Part shown: positions 2,955-53,834 of the stretch, one piece after another
Layout: each line of letters begins with the position of its first letter
Position numbering within the stretch: the stretch's first letter is position 1
Sequence record: MW349128.1
DNA: 64,000 bases
Direction: 5' to 3' (one strand)
Notes under the pieces: generated by a model
Told to the model about the DNA's origin: nothing
What the model saw: the letters and a program-made list of their open reading frames with translations, nothing else
The model's database searches: none
Translations under genes and position numbers: made by a program

Positions 2955-5900
2955 ATGCCAAAAGAAATAGATTTAACTTCAGAAAAATTTAAAGATTATT
3001 CATATAACGAATTAAACTCAAGAGGTTCACAATTAAAAGATGGTAATTTAGATTTAGAATTTGAATTAGCTTCAGTTAAAAAATACTTTTTAGATAATGT
3101 AAATAAAAATGTAAGATACTTTAAAACTTATAAAGAAAAAATTAACTATTTAGTAGATAATGATTATATTGATGGAGATATGATCAAAAATTATGATTTT
3201 GAATTTATTAAAGGATTAATGAAAGAATTAATGGCTTATAAACATAGATTCACTCGTTTATTAGGAGCTAAAAAATTCTATGAACAGTATGCAATGAAAG
3301 ATGATGCAGGAGAAATCTTATTAGAACTATATGAAGATAGAATTTTATTTGTAGCTTTATATTTAGCTGACGGTGATGAAGAATTAGCTAGAAATATTGC
3401 TAATGAAATTATTACAGGAACTTTCCAACCTGCCACACCAACATTCCTTAATGCAGGTAGAGTACGTTCTGGAGAATTAGTAAGTTGTTTCTTATTAACT
3501 ATGGAAGACTCTTTATCATCTATTTATAGAAATATCTCTAATGTAGCTCAATTAAGTAAACGTGGTGGAGGCGTAGGTAAACTATATACGTTTCATTAAG
3601 ATTTTTGAAAATTATAAATCTTAAATGATACTAATGCCTACGAAAAATCGTGTGAACTCATACTAAAGGGGTGTCTAATTATAATAATTAGGCTAACGGT
3701 CATAGCAGTTAATTATGCTGGTAAGAGAGACTAAGTCCTATTAAATTGATAGGATAGAGTTAATACCGTGCCAAGCTTTATACTATTCATAGCTTCTAGA
3801 TGGGAGCTTGATAAAATGAAAGAAAATGAAATATTTAAACAATTAGAAGAATTTCCAGACTATGATTTTGGTAGTCATGGAACTATAATATCTTATAAGA
3901 CTAAAAATCCTAGAAAAATTATACCCAAGATTGATAAGAATGGTTATCATGAAGTAGGATTGAGAGATTATACAAATAAAAGAAAATACAGAAAAGCACA
4001 TAGACTTATTCTATTAGCACATAATTATATAGAAAATTCAGAAGATATGCAAGTAAATCATATAAATGGTAAACCAGATGACAATCGTTTATCTAATTTA
4101 GAATGGTGTACATCTAAAGAAAATATGAAACATGCATATAATATTCTTAGTAAAAATAAAGATAATAATAAATTTAAAATAGAAGTTTTGATTAAAGATA
4201 AAAATGATAATATTTTTAATTTTGAATCTATGAGTAAAGCTTCAGTATTTATCAAAAGTTCTGTTGGTGGTCTAAGATCTTTCTGGGTTAGAAGAAAAAG
4301 ACCTACAAATGAATTTATTAAATATAAAGATTATGATATAATGTTTAAGCCTAGTGAAAACTGGATTAAAGAATATGGAAAAGAAATTGTTTAAAGTTAT
4401 GAATAGTAAATTGAAGGTGTAGAGACTATCGAAAAGAAAGTTTAATTACTTTACTTAGTAGAGTAGGTCAGAGATTAGTACTGATCGAAGTGCATGGCAT
4501 ATTATTTTAAATAATATGAAGATATAGTCCACTCATTATAGAAATATAGTGGTTAAAGTGATTAGTTTAAGTAATTTACGTGCTGACAATGATCCAATTA
4601 AAGGTGTTGAAGGTGCAGCTTCAGGTGTAGTTCCAGTTATGAAAGTATTTGAAGATACTTTATCATATGTAAATCAACTGGGTTAATTTTAATGGCTCAG
4701 TATAAATATTGTTAATTGCTGGAAAAGTTTACAAGCTTAATCAGCATCAATCAAGATGATTGTTCAACGACTAAATATAATAATACTTATTAATAGTATA
4801 AGATATAGTCTAATCTATATGAATTTCATATAGTTAATATAAATGCAACGTAATGGAGCTGGAGCTCTTTATTTAAATATTTTCCATAAAGATGTAGTAA
4901 AATTCTTAGATACTAAGAAAGAAAATGCTGATGAAAAAGTAAGATTAAAAACTATTTCATTAGGTTTAACAGTTCCAGATAAATATTATCAATTAGTTAA
5001 AGAAAATAAATCATTATATACATTTAGTCCATATGACATTAAAAAATATTACGATTTAGATTTCGATAGTATTGACTTTAATACTTATTATGATATCTTT
5101 GTAGATGATAAACGTATTAGTAAAGAGAAAATGTATGCTCGTGATTTAGAAACTACTATTAGTAAATTACAACAAGAATCTGGTTATCCTTATATCATTA
5201 ATATTGATACAGCTAATAGAGCTAATCCAATTAGTCATGGTACAATTAAAATGAGTAACTTGTGTAGCGAAATTCTACAAGTACAATACCCTTCATTAGT
5301 TGACGATAATCAACAATATGTTAAAACAGGAACAGACGTTTCATGTAATTTAGCTTCAACTATTGTACCTGGTTTAATGAAATCAAAAGACTTTGGTAAA
5401 TCAGTTGGAACTATGTTAAGAAGTTTAAATTCAGTAGCAGAAAAATCTAATATTGAAGCTGTACCTACAGTTAAGAAAGCTAATGATCTATTCCATACAG
5501 TTGGTTTAGGTGCAATGGGATTACACACTTATTTAGCTGAAAACCATATTCAATATGGATCAGAAGAATCTAAAGACTTTACTAATATTTATTTCATGTT
5601 ATTAAACTATTGGACATTAGTTGAATCAAATAAAATTGCTAAAGAAAAAGATGAGTCATTCTATTTATTTGAAAAAACTGAATATGCTGATGGCTCTTAC
5701 TTTGATAAACGTTATATTGGTAAAAATATTCAACCACGTACTGAAAAAGTTAAAGAATTATTTGAAGATATCTTTATTCCATCTGATAGTGATTGGGAAC
5801 AATTAAGAAATAATATTGTTATGGACGGTCTATACAATCAAAATAGATTAGCTGTAGCACCTAATGGTTCTATTGGTTATGTTAGAGAAGTATCACCTTC

Positions 5901-6300
5901 AATTCACCCTATTGTTGAATTAATTGAAGAGCGTGTAGAAGGTAAAACAGGTACTACTTTCTATCCAGCACCAGGTATTACACCAGACAACTTTGAATAC
6001 TTTAAGAAAAATGCATATCAACTGGATATGAGAGATATGATTGATTTATATTCAGAAGCTCAATATCATGTAGACCAAGGTATTTCAATGAATATTTACT
6101 TAATGAATGAACTTGATCCAGATATATATGAATGGAAAAAAGATTCTTTAGATAAAGAAACTACTACTCGTGATATTAGTAGATTACGTAACTATGCTTA
6201 TAGTAAAGGTATTAAATCTATGTATTATACTCGTATTTATTCACCAGACCATGATTCTCAATCTCAAGGAATAGTTGAATGTGAATCTTGTTCTATCTAA
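2955..6300 (+). CDS. nrdE: Class Ib ribonucleotide reductase alpha subunit, spliced: join(2955..3578,4561..4683,4846..6300), 733 aa
   Basis: Motifs FQPATPTFLNAG, SCFLL, GGGVG|ISLSNLR, NQLG|QRNGAGA, SNLCSEILQ, C-terminal CESCSI; the joins restore the frame at U|...G| boundaries. Confidence 0.93.
3579..4560 (+). mobile_element. Group I intron nrdE-I1 (982 nt) encoding an HNH homing endonuclease
   Basis: Interrupts GGGVG|ISLSNLR; 5' exon ends in U, intron ends in G; core elements GAAGGTGTAGAGACTATC and AAGATATAGTCC; P9 hairpin with GAAA loop; P1 pairing not clean. Confidence 0.88.
3816..4394 (+). CDS. Intron-encoded NUMOD4-HNH homing endonuclease (likely start 3816)
   Basis: GYHEVGL...KAHRLILLA...VNHINGKPDDNRLSNLEWCTSKENMKHAY; GGAG SD before ATG 3816. 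Confidence 0.9.
   Translation: MKENEIFKQLEEFPDYDFGSHGTIISYKTKNPRKIIPKIDKNGYHEVGLRDYTNKRKYRKAHRLILLAHNYIENSEDMQVNHINGKPDDNRLSNLEWCTSKENMKHAYNILSKNKDNNKFKIEVLIKDKNDNIFNFESMSKASVFIKSSVGGLRSFWVRRKRPTNEFIKYKDYDIMFKPSENWIKEYGKEIV
4684..4845 (+). ncRNA. ORF-less mini group I intron nrdE-I2 (162 nt)
   Basis: NQLG|QRNGA restored; P1 ACUGGGU/GCUCAGU with U-G wobble; AATTGCTGGAAA, AATCAGCATC, GTTCAACGACTA, AAGATATAGTCT; ends in G. Confidence 0.9.
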
Positions 6301-15236: not shown

Positions 15237-18200
15237 TTAAGTAAACATATTCAATCCCGGATTATTTGGATGGGGATTATATTGGGATTTATATCCATAA
15301 ATTGCATCATCAATTTGTTGTTGAAAAACTCTTCCTTTAATTACTTGCATACTTCTAGAATATTGAGTTTTCATATTAATTTGAGCTTTATCAATAATGG
15401 ATAGTTGATCTCTTCTAATTCCTGCTAAGCAATCAATATAAGATAATAATCCTGTATTAAATTTCATTCTTTGGAATGATTTAGAAGCCATTAAGTTTGG
15501 ATACATATCTCTAATATTAATAGATACAGTAATTTCTCTTGGGAAACCATCTGCAGTCCATGTACCTTCTTCACCACGAACTATATTCATTGAAGTTATT
15601 ATACCTGTATTACATTCAAATCTACCAGGACAATTAGCTCTAATAATAAACGGTTGCTTATAAGAGAATATTGAATCTTGTAAAGGTAAAGCTAATACTA
15701 ATAATGAAAGAAATGGTAAATATACATTGTCAAATATAGATTGTGGATCTCCATAAGCACTATAGAATTTAAATTCTAGATTATAAGTACGGTCAAAAGT
15801 TGAATTCATCCAAACCTGGTTTGTTAAATCTTGATTTTATATATTAAATATAAAGGCAAGACCTTGTATAAAATACACTTGGCTCAGTGACTAACGTATA
15901 AGGGAACCCTTATACTCCTTGTAAAGCTAATCGGACATTAGCTTATCACCCGTTTATCGTCTCCCGCTACCCGCAGGCGACTCTCATATCTTTTATTTTG
16001 TGAGATTAAACATATTTTAAATCTAGAATATTTTTAGCTGCATTTAAATCTCTATCAAGAACTACATCACAATTAGGACAATCATGAGTATCATCACCTA
16101 AAACTAATTTCTCTTTATTAGTTCTAACATAACCACATGATGAACATGTCTGTGTAGTCTTTTTCTTAGTAATAATATTTAATTCATTATCATAAAAATT
16201 AGATTTAAATTTTAATTTTTCTAAAAAATCATACTTACCAAATCTTCTATTAGAACGTCTAAGATTTCTGAATCTATCAGATATTTTATGTGGATATGGT
16301 TCTATATTGATTACTTTATAATTTTTAACTAACCAATTAGTAATTTTGTCCCTATGATCTTCCAACATATCATATTCTCTATTATAAGACTTTCTTAATT
16401 GTTTTAAAAGTTTGTAATATGATTTTGAATAATATTTTTTTCTATCTAATTTAGATTTAATTTTTTCAGTTTTTCTTTCTTGTTTCCATAGAATATTCGG
16501 TATTTTAAATTCAAATACTTGACCGTTTGAGTCTACAGCAGCTAAAGGAGTTTTTATCCCCATATCAATACCAATTGAATAATTATTTTCTCTCTGTTTC
16601 TTATAATTGATTATCTCATAAGTTATAGAGATGTAGAATTTTTCATTCTTTCTGCTTATGGTGTAATATTTAAAATTAATATCGTTAGAGTTAATAAATT
16701 TTAAAGATTCCTTAGTTTTAATAACAAAAGGTTTAATTCCTTTCATTGCAGAAACTCTTATCCATTTTTTAGATAAAAATTTTACAGGTAAACTTAGTTT
16801 ATCTTTAACTATAAATCTAAATGAATCGTTAGAATATTTTTTCTTTTTAAATTTAGGTTTAAATTTATCACTATCTATATAATTTTTAGATTTTCTAGCT
16901 TTACTCTGCATTTCATAGTATTTAGAAAAAGTCTGATTTAGATCTTTTAAAGCTTCTTGTCTAACCATACTATTAACTTCATAAAGATAAGGATAATTTC
17001 CAGAATTTTGAATTTCGTTGTTTAATTTCTTTTGAAAATCAAATCCACTAAATTTCTTATCATCATCAATATTCTGATAATCTTCTAAAGCCATATTCCA
17101 TACTTTTCTTCTTACACCAAAGCATTTATTGAAATAATTCTTTTGGTCTTGATTTGGGTATATTCTAGTTTTGAAAGATTTAACTATTCCTTTTTTCATT
17201 GTTTAATTTCACCTCCTAATCATATTATATAAATATGTTAGGAAATTCCTGATATGAATTTTTTATCAGTATTTTATACAATCTCTAAATTAGTAATTTA
17301 GAGCACAGACTATATCATACTCATTGATATGAGTGAATATATTTAGTCGTTGGACAAGTCTTATTGACTTGATGCTGATTGAGATAATAATCTATTCCAG
17401 CAATTAATATTCTTTGCTAATTAAAATTACTTTTAATAGGGACTATTTGTGTGAATAATCCGGATAATACATTGATGCACCATCTAAATGTTCCATAAAG
17501 TTACCTACAATACCACCAATAACTGGCATATTTGCTACCATATCATTAATACTATCTTTAATAGTTCTAGTAATTTTACCTAAAATAGAAGCTCCACCAA
17601 TACGAGCCATTTCTTTTTGTTCTCGTATTTCTTGGTTTTTATTATTAACTTGAGAAGCAATATCAGATTGATTATATTCATGCATTGCAGATTCTGATAT
17701 ACTAGTTGATTTATCTGCATAGTAAGCTAGTCCATAGTTTTTATCATCTTGTAGAGATCCACCTAGATCAAATGATCCTTTTAAACCCATTGATGCATGA
17801 ACTTGAGAAGCCATAGTTTGTACGTATTTATAATATTCAGCCATTTTAGGTTCAAAGCTTATCATACGACCATCTTTAGTATTACCGATACCTACTAAAG
17901 ATAAACCAGAGTTTACTAATCTATCCATTCCTTCACCAAAACTCCATAATTTACCTTCTCCTGGTTTACCAAATAATTTACCATTTAATTTAGGCATACC
18001 CGGCATTATAAATACTAAAGGTAAATCTAATTCAAATGTTCTTTTATATATTCTTCTATTAGGATCATCTAAACTAGAATAGTACATAGGCATTCCAAAT
18101 ACATCTAGTTCACCTTTAACATTTCTTAATTGTTTTTTATCTTTAGCATTTTTATCTGTTAAATATTCAGTTGCTTGTCTTTGATTACCCAAAGCATCCA

Positions 18201-18354
18201 TAAAAGCACCAGTATCTTTTTGAGTAGGATCATATTCATGATAGTCATAATCACCTTTTTTCTCATCAGCTTGAGGTATTAAAGCCATATCATCATCTGC
18301 CACTTTTAAAGGTTCTTGTTCCTTAGACTCTTTTTTATCTTTTTCTTCAGCCAA
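15237..18354 (-). CDS. Putative baseplate/tail structural protein, spliced: complement(join(15237..15815,17458..18354)), 491 aa
   Basis: Splicing gives GASMYYPD|VWMNSTFDRTYNLEFKFYSAYGDPQSIF, continuing to GIITSMNIVRGEEGTWTADGFP; function inferred from context. Confidence 0.7.
15816..16005 (-). ncRNA. Putative omega-RNA scaffold / intron 3' domain
   Basis: GC-richer non-coding 190 nt right after tnpB with stems AAGCTAAT/ATTAGCTT, GTATAAGG/CCTTATAC, GTCTTG/CAAGAT; abuts the 3' splice site. Confidence 0.6.
16006..17199 (-). CDS. tnpB: IS200/IS605-IS607-type RNA-guided endonuclease TnpB, 397 aa
   Basis: N-terminal KTRIYPNQDQKNYFNKCFGVRRKVWNMAL; RuvC IGIDMG, INIEP, DRDLNAAKNI; Zn ribbon CSSC...CPNC; AGGAGGTGA SD. 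Confidence 0.93.
   Translation of the reverse strand: MKKGIVKSFKTRIYPNQDQKNYFNKCFGVRRKVWNMALEDYQNIDDDKKFSGFDFQKKLNNEIQNSGNYPYLYEVNSMVRQEALKDLNQTFSKYYEMQSKARKSKNYIDSDKFKPKFKKKKYSNDSFRFIVKDKLSLPVKFLSKKWIRVSAMKGIKPFVIKTKESLKFINSNDINFKYYTISRKNEKFYISITYEIINYKKQRENNYSIGIDMGIKTPLAAVDSNGQVFEFKIPNILWKQERKTEKIKSKLDRKKYYSKSYYKLLKQLRKSYNREYDMLEDHRDKITNWLVKNYKVINIEPYPHKISDRFRNLRRSNRRFGKYDFLEKLKFKSNFYDNELNIITKKKTTQTCSSCGYVRTNKEKLVLGDDTHDCPNCDVVLDRDLNAAKNILDLKYV
17228..17239 (-). promoter_or_regulatory. Putative late promoter for tnpB inside the intron
   Basis: AACAtatttaTA ~30 nt upstream of the tnpB start codon. Confidence 0.5.
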
Positions 18355-46406: not shown

Positions 46407-48697
46407 ATGACAACAGAATTAAAGAATAAAGAAGAAAGAAAAAGAGCTTTAACTGGATATTTAGAACAATTGGTATGGATGGTTCAAAAGAATAATCCTG
46501 ATTTTGATAAAGAAGAAATATTAAAAGAATGTAGAGAATTTGTAAAAGAAAATGTTAAACCTGTTATGACAGAGGTATCAGGTCAAGAAATGAATGTTGA
46601 TTCTTTATTACGTACAGTTATTAATTCAAATTTAATAGTAACTGGATCAGGTTCGATTTATCAAACACAATCACAAAGAAAAAATTTAAATGCAGAGATG
46701 TTAAAAGACTTCATTGATTCACGTAAAGTAGCTAAACATAATATGTTTATAAGTAAAGGTGTAGACGATGTTAAATATCATAAATATATGAATGAACAAA
46801 AAACAATTAAGATCTTGGCTAATAGTTACTATGGTGCTATGATACAAGGAAATAGTATTTTCTATGATCCTTATTCAGGACCTGCTATCACATATAGTGG
46901 TGTTGATATTGTTACGACTTCAGCAATAGCTTTAGAAAGATTTATAGGTAGTAAAATATTCTTTATGAATATTAGTGAGATTTATAATTATATCGTAAGA
47001 ATATGTCAAGAAGAATATAAAGATCATGATATTAAGATAAATTCAGTTCCTACTGATAATGAAATATTAAAAGGTTTATTGGATAACGTAGAATATAATT
47101 TCTCTGAAGATGAAGAAAATGATTTAAAAGAATTCTTTAGTAATTTAACTCAAGATGAGAAAAATAGAGTTTATTTTAAAAATAATCTTTATGGTTTATT
47201 AGATCACACTGATATATTTGATAATAAAATTAGTAAAATGACAGGTAGAGAAGATTTCTTAGATCCGAACGAACCACCTGAAGATATGATACCATTATTA
47301 GATGAATTATTTGATATATTAGAAGACTGGGTTATTTATAATTATCAAGATTACAATAGAATGTATAGAATGAATTATAAAAAACGTAGAAGTGTACTTA
47401 CAATCGATTATGATAACATGGTCGCTGCTTAAAGTAATTTAAGTTGATTCACATTATTAATTGCTGAGAAAGTATTTATTAAATTAATCAGCATCAATCA
47501 ATATGATTGTTCAACGACTAAATATAATGATACTCATAAAGAGTATATGATATAGTCTATTTTATATTTAAAAATATAATATTAAAGACAGATAGTAACT
47601 TCGTACATTTAGATCCATTATATCAAAAAATGAAAGAAAAGAAACCTGAAGATTTCCCTATTGCAGAAAATGGTTTAGAAGATAAATTAGAACAACGTGT
47701 AGGTAATATATCTATTATTAACTATCAAATTACTAAATTGCTAGAATTATCTTATCATAGATTCTGTAAAGATTTAGGATTAGAAGATGAACATTTAGGT
47801 GTTATATCTATGAAAAATGAGTATGTAAATGCTCCAGTATACAGTAATGTGTATTAGTAAATATTATTAATTGCTGAGACAAAATAAAATTAATCAGCAT
47901 CTTCAAATAATGAAGTTCAACGACTAAATATAATAATTCTTAATAATAAAGAATATGATATAGTCTAGTCTTATATTTAAAATATAAGTATAAACGTTTT
48001 ACTTGACAAACAGTTAACAACAGATAAAAAGAAAACTTATGCTTCATCAGTAATTCAACAAGAGGGTAATTTAGTTCAACCACCAGACTTAGATGTTAAA
48101 GGTATGGCTATTAGAAAAGTTAATACTAATAAACGTATTAGAGAATTATTTACTGAAATATTACAAAAAGATATCTTAGAAAATAAAACTGGAATTGATA
48201 GAATTGGAATTATACGTAAATATAAAGAAATTGAAGAAATGATTAAAAAATCATTAGAGAATGGTGATATTGAATTCTTAAAACCTGGTAAAGCTAATAA
48301 CGCAGAAGTATATAAAGATCCTTATACACAAATGAATTATAGAGCAGCTTTATCATGGAATTTAATGTATCCAGATAAAGAAATATCTCTTCCAGCAAAT
48401 ATCTTAATGGTTAAATTAAATATTAAATCATTTGGAGATATTAAGGATAAAGTTGATGATGAAGAATTATTAGATAAATTTAGAGAAGTATTTAGAAACG
48501 AAAGATTAGTTAAAAATGGAATGAATGTAATTGCAGTTGAAGGTAATACAATTCCTGAAGAATTTAGACCTTTTATTGATTATGATTCAATGATAGAAGA
48601 TCATATTAAACCAGGTAAAGATATTATTGAATCTATTGGAGTTAAAGTGTTAGAATCTTCAAATAGTTCTTTCGTATCAAATATGGTTAAATTTTAA
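46407..48697 (+). CDS. Family B DNA polymerase, split subunit with motifs B and C, spliced: join(46407..47408,47588..47822,47997..48697), 645 aa
   Basis: KILANSYYG (motif B); splicing restores VLTID|TDSNF (motif C) and MKNE|FLLDKQLTTDKKKTYAS; no motif A seen. Confidence 0.88.
47409..47587 (+). ncRNA. ORF-less mini group I intron polB-I1 (179 nt)
   Basis: P1 CGAU/GUCG; P2 with GUAA loop; P3 CATTAT/ATAATG; P7 GACTA/TAGTC; ends in G. Confidence 0.92.
47823..47996 (+). ncRNA. ORF-less mini group I intron polB-I2 (174 nt)
   Basis: P1 GAGU/GCUC; P10 UUUAC/GUAAA; same core motifs; ends in G. Confidence 0.9.
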
Positions 48698-51805: not shown

Positions 51806-53792
51806 ATGAAAGTAGATATGATAGATATTGAACAAGTCATAACTGATACAAATGCTAAAGAAGTAACCAATCCTGTATTTTTCGATTCAGGTATACTACC
51901 AAAAGAAGATGGTTTATTTTCATATGATATATTTGGTTTAATAGGTACTCCTGAAAGAAAAACCAATTTAGGTTGGATTAATTTAAAGGATAAATACCTT
52001 AATCCGGTGGCTTATAAAGCATTAAAAGATTTAGATAAAAATATTGAACTATGTATTCAGGGTTCAGAGTATTTTAAAGTAGAAAAAGGTCAATTAGTTC
52101 CTTCAGAAGATGGAGATACTGGACTGAATTTCTTATATGAAGTATTTGATGATTTAAAATTTAGAAAGAATGATTCTCGTATTAGATCTGAAAAAATTGA
52201 TATGATTAAAAATACAGATAAGCAAAAAATATTTGTAGATAAATGGCTAGTAATACCTGCTTTTTATAGAGACTTTAATCCTAATGAAACTTCAGGAGAA
52301 ATTCAAGATACTGAAGAAGTTAATAATATGTATTCTTCTATTATACGTTCTGTAGATGCTATTAGTTTTAATTCTTTTGGTTTTATTGCTAACAGTACTA
52401 AATATAATATACAAAATACATTATTTGAAATATATCAGAAATTTACTTCAGGAGAATTATCAGGTAAAACTGGTTTTATGCAAAAACGTATATTGGGTAA
52501 AACAGTAGATAATAGTACTCGTGCAGTTATTTCTTCACCTAAAATTAATTCGAATAGATGGGATGAAATGCAGATAGAGTTTGGTGAGTTAGGTGTACCA
52601 TTAACTCAATTAGTTACCTTATTTTTACCATTCTTTAATAAGTATATAATTGATTTTATTGAACTTCATAAAGATGCTTTCCAAACAGCTACTGGAAATG
52701 ATGAGAAAGAATTATCATTAGAAGAAGTGTATGAACAATTCGATGATAAATCTATTAAGAATATGCTAGAATTCTTTATTAAAGATCCTAATGAAAGATT
52801 TAGTCCTATATATGTAAATGATAGAGAAGGTAAACGCCATAAAGTTAAATTATTTGAAAAAACTTTGGGTAGAGATTTTACTGTAATTGATTTACTTTAT
52901 ATTGCTGCAACCGAAATAGTAGAAGATAAGCATGTTATGTATTCAAGATATCCGATTAATAAAATGGTCGCTGCTTAAAGTGATTTAAGTTGATAAACAT
53001 TGTTAATTGCTGAAATACTATTAATAAAGTTAATCAGCATCAATTAAATATAATTGTTCAACGACTAAATGCAATGATACTATTTAATAGTATATAATAT
53101 AGTCTAATTTATATAATACTTATATAAATATAATAAATGCGAAAATTTCTTGAACGTAGCACCTGCTAAAATTAAAATATTAACTACTGTTGATACTATT
53201 CCAGAAATAATTTTAGATGATATAGTATTAAAAGATTACCCTAAAGTAGTAAGAGAGTATCCTGTTGATGAAGATATTTTCTTAGATACTGCAATCATAC
53301 ACAATTCATATGCTCAAGCACTTGGTGCAGATTTTGATGGCAAAATTTTATATTACCATCATTAAATAATATTAATTGCTGGAAAATCTAATAAGATAAT
53401 CAGCATCAACTTAATAAAAGTTGTTCAACGACTAAATATATTACTAAAGAAGATATAGTCTAATTATATGTAAATACATGTATATAAAATGGATATGATT
53501 TCAATACGCTCTTTATGGTCTGTAGAAGCAAATAAAGAAGCTGATAAACTTATTAATAAGAAAACTAATTACTTAAACTACACAGGAAATAGTATACGTG
53601 GAGTTGGTAATGAGAGTAAGTTTGTATGCTCTCAATAAATTTCATTAATTGCTGGAAAAACAAAATTAATCAGCATCAACTTAATAAAAGTTGTTCAACG
53701 ACTAAATATGAAAATGATTTAAATATCATAAGATATAGTCTAATTATCATAAATATATGGTACAAGCTTTATATTCTTTAACTAAAGAATAA
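51806..53792 (+). CDS. Phage multisubunit RNA polymerase beta-prime fragment with catalytic DFDGD, spliced: join(51806..52956,53140..53341,53492..53617,53760..53792), 503 aa
   Basis: DGLFSYDIFG, LSGKTGFMQKRILGKTVDNSTRAVISSP; splicing gives SRYPI|ENF, GADFDG|DMISIR, GNES|VQALYSLTKE*. Confidence 0.88.
52957..53139 (+). ncRNA. ORF-less mini group I intron rpoC-I1 (183 nt)
   Basis: P1 CGAU/GUCG; P2 with GUGA loop; P3 CATTGT/GCAATG; P7; ends in G. Confidence 0.88.
53342..53491 (+). ncRNA. ORF-less mini group I intron rpoC-I2 (150 nt), C-A 5' splice site
   Basis: Splits DFDG|D; P1 GAUGGC/ACCAUC; P10 GAUAUG/UAUAUU; core motifs present; P8 vestigial. Confidence 0.85.
53618..53759 (+). ncRNA. ORF-less mini group I intron rpoC-I3 (142 nt)
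   Basis: P1 UGAGAGU/GCUCUCA; P10 GUACAAG/UUUGUAU; P3 TTTCAT/ATGAAA; P7; ends in G. Confidence 0.9.
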
Positions 53793-53803
53793 TTTAAAAA
53801 TTC

Positions 53804-53834
53804 AGAGTAACGGTCTAATATAGATCGTTACTCT
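53804..53834 (+). terminator. Hairpin after the RNAP gene
   Basis: AGAGTAACGGTCTA-ata-TAGATCGTTACTCT; its position just after stop 53792 supports the last exon. Confidence 0.7.

Follow-up and report, generated by a model that had tools for sequence, protein, structure and literature searches.

The stretch of DNA under study (hereafter the window, meaning all 64,000 nucleotides that were analysed) is 100% identical to sequence record MW349128.1 of Staphylococcus phage Machias, a virulent jumbo phage of 274 kb related to Bacillus phage AR9; a window position equals the record position minus 62000. On the minus strand of the window, the virion-protein gene CPT_Machias_090 is interrupted by an insert that holds a compact ribozyme core, an intact tnpB gene and a structured non-coding tail, in this order from 5′ to 3′. 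The main parts of the locus, with the evidence behind each, are as follows, PB50 being a related phage in which the gene is uninterrupted.

17458..18354, minus strand: exon 1 of the virion-protein gene CPT_Machias_090 (GenBank joined coding sequence, PHROG 20401, junction against PB50)
15816..17457, minus strand: whole insert, group I intron with tnpB and putative guide-RNA scaffold, 1642 nt (junctions against PB50)
17283..17457, minus strand: ribozyme core (landmarks, covariation and core profile)
16006..17199, minus strand: tnpB, 397 aa, intact (Pfam, PHROG and alignment with ISDra2 TnpB)
15816..16005, minus strand: 190-nt structured tail, putative omega-RNA scaffold
15237..15815, minus strand: exon 2 of the virion-protein gene, starting with GTTTGG at 15815 (PHROG and PB50 alignment)

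The insert and its tnpB gene

GenBank already presents CPT_Machias_090 as a joined two-exon coding sequence for a "virion protein" and labels the internal open reading frame (ORF) "transposase", noting that HHpred matches it to CasX; the preprint of the Machias authors treats introns and homing endonucleases and never names a transposase or TnpB. A first-pass annotation made from the window sequence alone had spoken of a split tail/baseplate gene; the split is real, and the tail/baseplate part goes back only to the "virion protein" annotation and the neighbouring genes. Around this gene, phages PB50 and AH12 are 97% identical to Machias and lack the insert, which is also missing from MarsHill and Madawaska, so that the alignment with relatives proposed at first pass as a check yields uninterrupted alleles in all four phages. 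Aligning both Machias junctions with the PB50 gene leaves a single possible solution: the exons of 897 and 579 nt are in frame and add up to the 1476 nt of the PB50 coding sequence, which speaks indirectly for splicing, and a single PHROG profile, phrog_20401, covers them in succession (positions 24-296 for exon 1 and 300-451 for exon 2). The claim of a 1642-nt insert that follows GAU and ends in G thus holds with exact boundaries against the empty PB50 allele. Exon 1 ends at 17458 with CCGGAT, which supplies the 5′ strand GGAU of the first paired region (P1) and occupies the would-be position of the target-adjacent motif (TAM) of TnpB; the first base of the insert follows the splice-site U and its last base is the terminal G (omega-G).

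The insert has a single ORF of at least 40 aa, namely tnpB. Its product carries the Pfam domains HTH_OrfB_IS605 (E 9e-13), OrfB_IS605, which is the RuvC nuclease domain (E 4e-12), and the zinc ribbon Cas12f1-like_TNB (E 5e-15), and it matches PHROG 506 (E 2e-65). The RuvC triad D212, E300 and D384 aligns with D191, E278 and D361 of ISDra2 TnpB, two CxxC pairs are present, and D212, D384 and the four cysteines are invariant in an alignment of 30 TnpB sequences; the gene is therefore as intact, in its RuvC D/E/D triad and zinc ribbon, as the first-pass annotation had it. The accompanying statement that no TnpA is present also stood up: a Pfam-verified Y1 TnpA from a cyanobacterial locus, used as tblastn query against the window, returned nothing significant (best E 3.9; no serine recombinase was used as query), and no TnpA neighbours the element at the 12 loci of its family that were examined. 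A tblastn for TnpA against all phages gave 121 records, and the negative for Machias covers the window. Two short signals precede the gene.

17212..17217, minus strand: ribosome-binding site AGGAGG of tnpB
17228..17239, minus strand: AACA(N6)TW motif, candidate internal promoter, 40 nt upstream of the tnpB ATG

The second is the late-promoter consensus of AR9-type phages (Korn et al. preprint), and 10 of the 12 family loci have it 31-40 nt ahead of the tnpB start codon. A scan of the element for sigma-70 promoters and terminators gave sites no more frequent than in shuffled sequence.

Ribozyme core and 3′ tail

The first part of the insert folds into the compact core listed here, which is followed by an additional hairpin ahead of tnpB.

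17443-17440, minus strand: internal guide sequence GUCC
17412-17407 and 17340-17335, minus strand: P3 strands
17348-17344 and 17312-17308, minus strand: P7 strands
17303-17283, minus strand: P9 hairpin
17249..17269, minus strand: extra hairpin after P9 (P9.1-like), kept in all five TnpB-bearing copies

The core also holds a GNRA-capped P2, P4-P6 and P8. In P1, exon GGAU pairs with intron GUCC, and the one TnpB-bearing copy that lies after AGAU has GUCU instead. Among 14 family members from Machias and phage LY01, P3 forms six of six pairs in every case with ten different strand sequences, and a control with swapped strand partners reaches six of six pairs only 8% of the time. P4 and P7 do not vary, and P5, P6, P8 and P9 covary, the stems being kept with different sequences. 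A terminal G stands directly before the exon in all five TnpB-bearing copies and in six of the seven more distant loci described below (no end was identified for the seventh, L177). Judged by its helix order, the P3/P7 pseudoknot, the U-G at the 5′ splice site and this terminal G, the element is a group I intron. The view that it is not an intron at all was rejected on account of the covariation and of a profile of the 14 Machias-type cores, which matches upstream of tnpB in five of the related loci, among them L009 with an intron that reaches the Rfam gathering threshold. The helices named in the first-pass annotation (P1, GNRA-capped P2, P3 and P7) were all recovered; P10 was also found, as 5 bp in the virion-protein copy. 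It is not conserved in the sister copies, and it was dropped as a family feature because two LY01 copies share their 5′ leader and differ in their second exons. As for P2 and the terminal hairpin of the tail, they were considered as leftover recognition hairpins of a TnpA and rejected, both varying freely between copies.

The structured non-coding tail, estimated at first pass at about 190 nt up to the 3′ splice site, is 190 nt long, conserved and covarying. Its elements are these.

15981-15959, minus strand: tail stem 1
15915-15896, minus strand: tail stem 3
15863-15828, minus strand: terminal stem of the tail
15827-15816, minus strand: conserved 3′ end of the tail

The tails of the five copies are 90-97% identical while the ORFs that precede them have diverged to a synonymous rate (dS) of 0.5-0.76. 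RNAalifold predicts two stems with compensatory changes in 8 of 16 pairs, further stems covary between Machias and LY01, and conservation of the last 12 nt of the intron extends to relatives with as little as ~45% TnpB identity. The tail has no Rfam family of its own; a 15-mer taken from it and scanned in IMG/VR and the JGI metagenomes hit 141 loci, all of which proved to be chance matches in a profile check. Its 5′ motif (a GUCGCC stem-loop, GGAGAC, then UAAACG) also occurs where ordinary bacterial IS605 tnpB genes have their 3′ end. The tail thus has the features of a functional RNA tied to TnpB and is taken as the putative omega-RNA scaffold, lying wholly downstream of the ORF. Occurrences of the 5′ motif at a tnpB 3′ end were noted at a Nocardia locus (L036, at 2571) and at a Bifidobacterium locus (L066, 2319-2474), where it adjoins the Rfam Transposase-2 RNA (RF03015); this suggests that the RF03015 family represents part of a TnpB guide-RNA scaffold.

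At the 3′ splice site the conserved scaffold gives way to variable sequence, which points to the start of exon 2 as the guide.

15796..15815, minus strand: predicted guide, the first ~16-20 nt of exon 2 (from the architecture and the unrelated flanks)

The first-pass proposal of an exon-2 guide combined with a TAM ending in GAT is consistent with the comparative data, in which the 5′ flanks of all five copies end in GAT.

Copies, empty sites and routes of spread

A protein search returned five close TnpBs, three in Machias and two in LY01, located in five different genes: the virion-protein gene, gyrB, the gene for virion RNA polymerase beta and two large neighbouring genes of the structural region. 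The five copies have a common layout of ~210 nt of core and extra hairpin, a conserved leader with AGGAGG, tnpB and the ~190-nt tail. Their 5′ flanks are CCGGAT, TTAGAT, TCGGAT, CCGGAT and GCGGAT, that is, four GGAT and one AGAT; their 3′ ends read ..TTAACAA(G/A)(A/C)CAG, and the second exons are unrelated between copies. At each site a single genome has the insert, and all comparable relatives lack it (at least four for the virion-protein site, eight or nine for the others), these relatives being 84-98% identical around the insertion sites. Divergence among the copies far exceeds that between Machias and PB50, and the Machias copies are not each other's closest relatives; this favours separate horizontal gains over recent copying within a genome or repeated precise loss. 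None of the five tnpB genes is disrupted, and at the dS given above their ratios of nonsynonymous to synonymous substitution (dN/dS) are 0.10-0.27; tnpB is under purifying selection.

The exons bordering the insertions carry further marks. In exon 2 of the virion-protein gene, 8 of the 21 differences from PB50 fall between +12 and +37 and the next lies at +174 (binomial P = 2.7e-5); all eight are synonymous, and five of the states are common to Machias and the more distant MarsHill. This cluster looks like a co-conversion tract left by copying of the element together with adjoining sequence, the alternative being target-site escape in the PB50/AH12 lineage. On the other side, empty alleles have [T/C/A]GAT, mostly TGAT, before the insertion point, and four filled alleles have acquired GGAT by a synonymous change. 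The G at -4 thus looks like an adaptation to P1 pairing or a co-converted base and not like a part of the TAM. Since P1 is kept by changes on either side, splicing appears to matter, and the TAM would be nearer to xGAT (mostly TGAT) than to GGAT. One such change is in gyrB (L007, around 2843), where the Ser codon before the intron is TCG in Machias and AGT in four Staphylococcus relatives (comparison set L178, L179, L189, L190 and L191): the two codons are synonymous although all three bases differ, and the change supplies the G for P1 pairing; base +6 differs as well. It could have come about by stepwise selection or by co-conversion from an unsampled donor.

Beyond the five copies, TnpBs of 33-48% identity were found only on metagenome contigs with phage genes, which encode prohead protease, DnaB-like helicase, a divergent DNA polymerase, tubulin and fibre repeats. 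In all seven related loci examined, the group I core signature lies upstream of tnpB, and two of them reach the Rfam gathering threshold over the full model (L009 with 61.4 bits and L173 with 61.7 bits), their cores being larger than that of Machias. The tail is present in six of the seven, ending ..AACAAGACAG or ..AATAAGACGG directly before an in-frame exon; it was looked for at L177 and not found. A profile built from the five Staphylococcus tails alone matches right after tnpB in L009, L173 and L012, with E values from 1e-15 to 1e-12. The supposition that the chimera arose in Machias, drawn from the match between its core and the phage's own mini-introns, is contradicted by these loci: the association of intron and tnpB is common to seven distant phage loci and therefore predates Machias, and the compact Machias core is more likely a reduced form. 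The argument built on it for an origin apart from the clostridial IStrons (introns joined to transposon genes) thereby loses its support. In bacterial and archaeal genomes sampled at one per species, the best TnpB is 24-29% identical among the matches listed, and no close cellular relative appears there; a protein-guided scan of IMG/VR found at best 32% identity. Two IMG/VR loci (L093 and L094) have the core signature upstream of tnpB and no Rfam match at gathering. Among 50,697 GenBank phages the TnpB clade occurs in Machias and LY01 only, and Machias TnpB is no closer to the TnpBs of phage c-st (27% identity) and of a C. difficile phage (26%) than to unrelated TnpBs.

Taken as a whole, the comparative data make it fairly probable that the element is a TnpA-less group I intron with TnpB and a scaffold, belonging to an undescribed, phage-restricted branch of the IStron type (IStrons being group I introns joined to insertion-sequence genes), and that co-infecting phages pass it to one another by RNA-guided homing. 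A transcript begun upstream of the gene would contain the ribozyme and splice at 17458|15815, leaving the supply of structural protein unharmed. The guide RNA would come from transcripts in which scaffold and exon 2 stay joined, the guide consisting of the first ~16-20 nt of exon 2. Splicing would separate this guide from its scaffold, as it does in IStrons (PMC10690162); guide-RNA transcripts may start at the conserved internal motif that resembles a late promoter, and they would then be free of the ribozyme. In a related phage infecting the same cell, the loaded TnpB would cut the intron-less allele of the gene, at a target made up of xGAT and the exon-2 sequence. The filled allele would be spared, since the intron end ..CCAG stands in front of the target there. 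With the intron-bearing genome as template for repair, the element would be copied over together with some adjoining exon sequence, which is homing; the cutting could also simply handicap the competitor phage.

Several points weigh against this interpretation. The intron-bearing allele was sampled in only one genome per site, so that a donor allele is missing from the sample and homing at a shared site is not directly seen. Between the predicted guides and the empty alleles there are 1-3 mismatches in the first 20 positions, and these alleles may be poor targets. The interpretation does not account for the arrival at five unrelated sites without TnpA; a TnpA acting in trans, reverse splicing followed by a phage reverse transcriptase, or illegitimate repair are possible routes for the first arrival. 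The DNA of these phages reportedly contains uracil instead of thymine, and TnpB would have to read its TAM in it. The Rfam group I model RF00028 gives no match in the window, even at E <= 10 when the insert is searched by itself, nor to the sister copies at E <= 1, and the group I identification therefore rests on the other evidence set out above; P10 is convincing in the virion-protein copy only, and the AACA(N6)TW motif is of low information content. A fuller account, in which these phage-restricted introns use TnpB as a re-programmable homing nuclease, the internal late promoter avoids the clash between splicing and guide formation, TnpB works on the uracil DNA of AR9-like jumbo phages and the element serves as both homing device and weapon, is doubtful as a whole and is offered as a tentative extension.

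Machias and its relatives hold many other copies of the core, and these bear on a different route of spread. In the window, the core signature selects exactly seven sites, the insert and six ORF-less introns, and the claim that they share one core agrees with the alignment, the first ~150 nt being 73-82% identical. Host genes of the six are nrdE and those for DNA polymerase and virion RNA polymerase beta′, each of which is annotated with several exons.

4684..4845, plus strand: ORF-less mini-intron in nrdE (boundaries from reading frame and P1)
47451..47590 (approximate), plus strand: ORF-less mini-intron core in the DNA polymerase gene
47861..47998 (approximate), plus strand: ORF-less mini-intron core in the DNA polymerase gene
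52997..53137 (approximate), plus strand: ORF-less mini-intron core in the virion RNA polymerase beta′ gene
53366..53493 (approximate), plus strand: ORF-less mini-intron core in the virion RNA polymerase beta′ gene
53639..53773 (approximate), plus strand: ORF-less mini-intron core past the annotated end of the beta′ N-terminal coding sequence

Searched with the element by BLAST, Machias has 20 matching places, LY01 23, AH12 19, PB50 11, Madawaska 9 and MarsHill 6, nearly all of them copies of the core; this compact intron family is very abundant in the phage group and highly variable in copy number. Some details of the neighbourhood were noted along the way. The beta′ N-terminal coding sequence, joined from three pieces, is annotated to 53638, and a short open frame and a hairpin follow the last core (53639-53830, plus strand); a last short exon may be unannotated. 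The first intron of nrdE (2955-6300) contains an HNH endonuclease gene (3816-4394, plus strand), so that ORF-less, HNH-bearing and TnpB-bearing introns stand side by side in one window. In LY01 (L008, 5840-6990), downstream of the TnpB intron in the virion RNA polymerase beta region, four more core signatures occur within ~1.2 kb, which is unusually dense.

Such abundance could mean that the intron family spreads by reverse splicing, reverse transcription and recombination, with TnpB as a passenger or as a means of restoring lost copies. The five sites indeed share only the 3-4 nt that match in P1 (GAU or GGAU), the ~20 related cores per genome are mostly ORF-less, and these phages encode a retron-like reverse transcriptase. 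This route leaves unexplained, however, why tnpB and a tail ending exactly at the 3′ splice site are so tightly conserved and why intron, tnpB and tail travel jointly across distant phages, and no evidence ties the reverse transcriptase to the introns; as the principal mechanism it is unlikely. Equally improbable as a complete explanation is that TnpB and its RNA act mainly as a weapon that harms intron-less competitors through their essential genes, while the element itself is hardly copied or not at all. The genes at risk have essential or structural functions (virion protein, gyrB, virion RNA polymerase beta), and such a role is ascribed to an intron-encoded protein endonuclease in phage PhiPA3 (PMC11620839); a weapon is nonetheless compatible with homing, and the sporadic gains and the tract resembling co-conversion point to copying too.

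The lack of a TnpA raises the possibility that the element is a stranded remnant, an IStron that lost its TnpA long ago, is immobile and is tolerated because it splices, with TnpB and its RNA having no current role in spread. Neither the element and the window, searched with the Y1 query, nor the surroundings of the related loci yielded a TnpA, and TnpA-deleted IStrons are common (PMC4227781). What makes a remnant a poor candidate is the combination of five intact tnpB copies under the constraint described above, a tail more conserved than the ORF, sites each filled in a single genome among closely similar relatives, and mismatches that cluster in the flank. Finally, the first-pass alternative of a guide that starts inside the intron tail and targets TnpB-less intron copies has many ORF-less core relatives in the same genomes to draw on and is highly improbable, given that the clade as a whole conserves the last 12 nt of the tail, that variation begins exactly at the exon and that the mini-introns appear to have no counterpart of the tail, since a BLAST of the tail against the window gave, outside the element, only short weak matches (best E 0.003).

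Comparison with known systems

TnpB is the ancestor of Cas12, and its known natural role is to prevent the loss of IS605 and IS607 transposons, bacterial IStrons included. The introns of known IStrons belong to subclass IA2. IStrons join a group I intron with IS605 or IS607 genes, and phage IStrons as well as TnpB-only derivatives have been described; group A inserts after TTGAT-like motifs and ends in TCAG, and group B is found in C. botulinum phages (PMC4227781). IStron TnpBs cut the empty site, and the formation of their guide RNA competes with splicing (PMC10690162). A 2026 review put forward that TnpA-less IStrons could spread by intron homing (PMC13565253). IStrons, their phage-borne and TnpB-only forms, the idea of homing, and the GenBank record of a split gene with a "transposase" are thus prior knowledge, and a literature search found no description of TnpB in introns of virulent phages. 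What is added here is a TnpB and putative guide-RNA module in presumably self-splicing introns of virulent jumbo phages without a transposase, in a pattern that fits horizontal, site-specific spread. If the interpretation is right, the element would be a natural case of RNA-guided intron homing; it would bear on the accumulation of introns in jumbo phages, on the competition of phages inside one cell and on how the conflict between splicing and guide formation is resolved. The known TnpBs would also gain a compact clade, one that may be able to work on DNA containing uracil.

With IStrons in general, the Machias element shares, on sequence grounds, ends that coincide with splice sites and multiple copies at a common target motif, and it departs from them in its apparent lack of TnpA. 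The likeness to group A (CdISt1 type) is as follows: the intron core lies 5′ and tnpB 3′, the ends of the element are the splice sites, the flank ..GAT and the terminus ..CAG of the Machias type correspond to the known TTGAT and TCAG, several copies sit in unrelated protein-coding genes, and TnpA-less derivatives exist. Unlike group A, Machias-type elements have neither TnpA nor a remnant of it at the 12 loci examined (no serine recombinase served as query), their host is a virulent jumbo phage and not a bacterial chromosome, the Machias core is much reduced (~175 nt) and escapes Rfam, and TnpB relatives of more than 33% identity occur only on phage-like contigs, a comparison that included no group A TnpB. 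The TnpB locus of C. difficile phage HGP05 was considered as a group A comparator and set aside, Rfam showing no group I intron there. At that locus (L333, Clostridioides phage HGP05, 48718-52397), a gene for a 381-aa TnpB is flanked on each side by more than 1 kb without an ORF of at least 80 aa or an Rfam match.

Group B IStrons (BcISt1 and CboIStron, of the IS607 type, among them those of the C. botulinum phages c-st and D-1873) resemble the Machias element in a scaffold that ends at the 3′ splice site, in the competition between splicing and guide formation and in the location of some of them in phage genomes. They differ in that their host phages are temperate, that the c-st TnpB is distant from that of Machias (the 27% identity given above), and that they carry or carried a serine TnpA; the Machias splice-site base, for its part, is the usual U. 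Two metagenome phage contigs (L011 and L174) have a TGGGT flank and an end ..AAGACGG that recall the ends of group B, yet by TnpB and by the 5′ part of the tail they fall into one clade with the elements ending in ..ACAG.

Among single proteins, ISDra2 TnpB (PDB 8BF8, 8EXA and 8H1J) aligns with Machias TnpB over its full length (E ~1e-18), including the RuvC triad and the zinc-finger cysteines, and its guide follows the scaffold at the right end of the element with the TAM at the left flank, an arrangement predicted for Machias as well. The two proteins are ~25% identical, and the Machias system differs in a putative scaffold placed wholly downstream of the ORF, in the absence of TnpA and in its location inside a ribozyme. 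In terms of way of life, a parallel is offered by phage introns with protein homing endonucleases, such as T4 td/I-TevI, PhiPA3 gp210 and the HNH-bearing nrdE intron of the same window, which likewise have a nuclease ORF in a self-splicing intron within an essential phage gene, a polymorphism of presence and absence, signs of co-conversion in the flanks and a possible role in competition between phages. In contrast to these endonucleases, whose specificity is fixed in the protein, the Machias nuclease would be RNA-guided and would take its specificity from the neighbouring exon, re-setting it at each new site.

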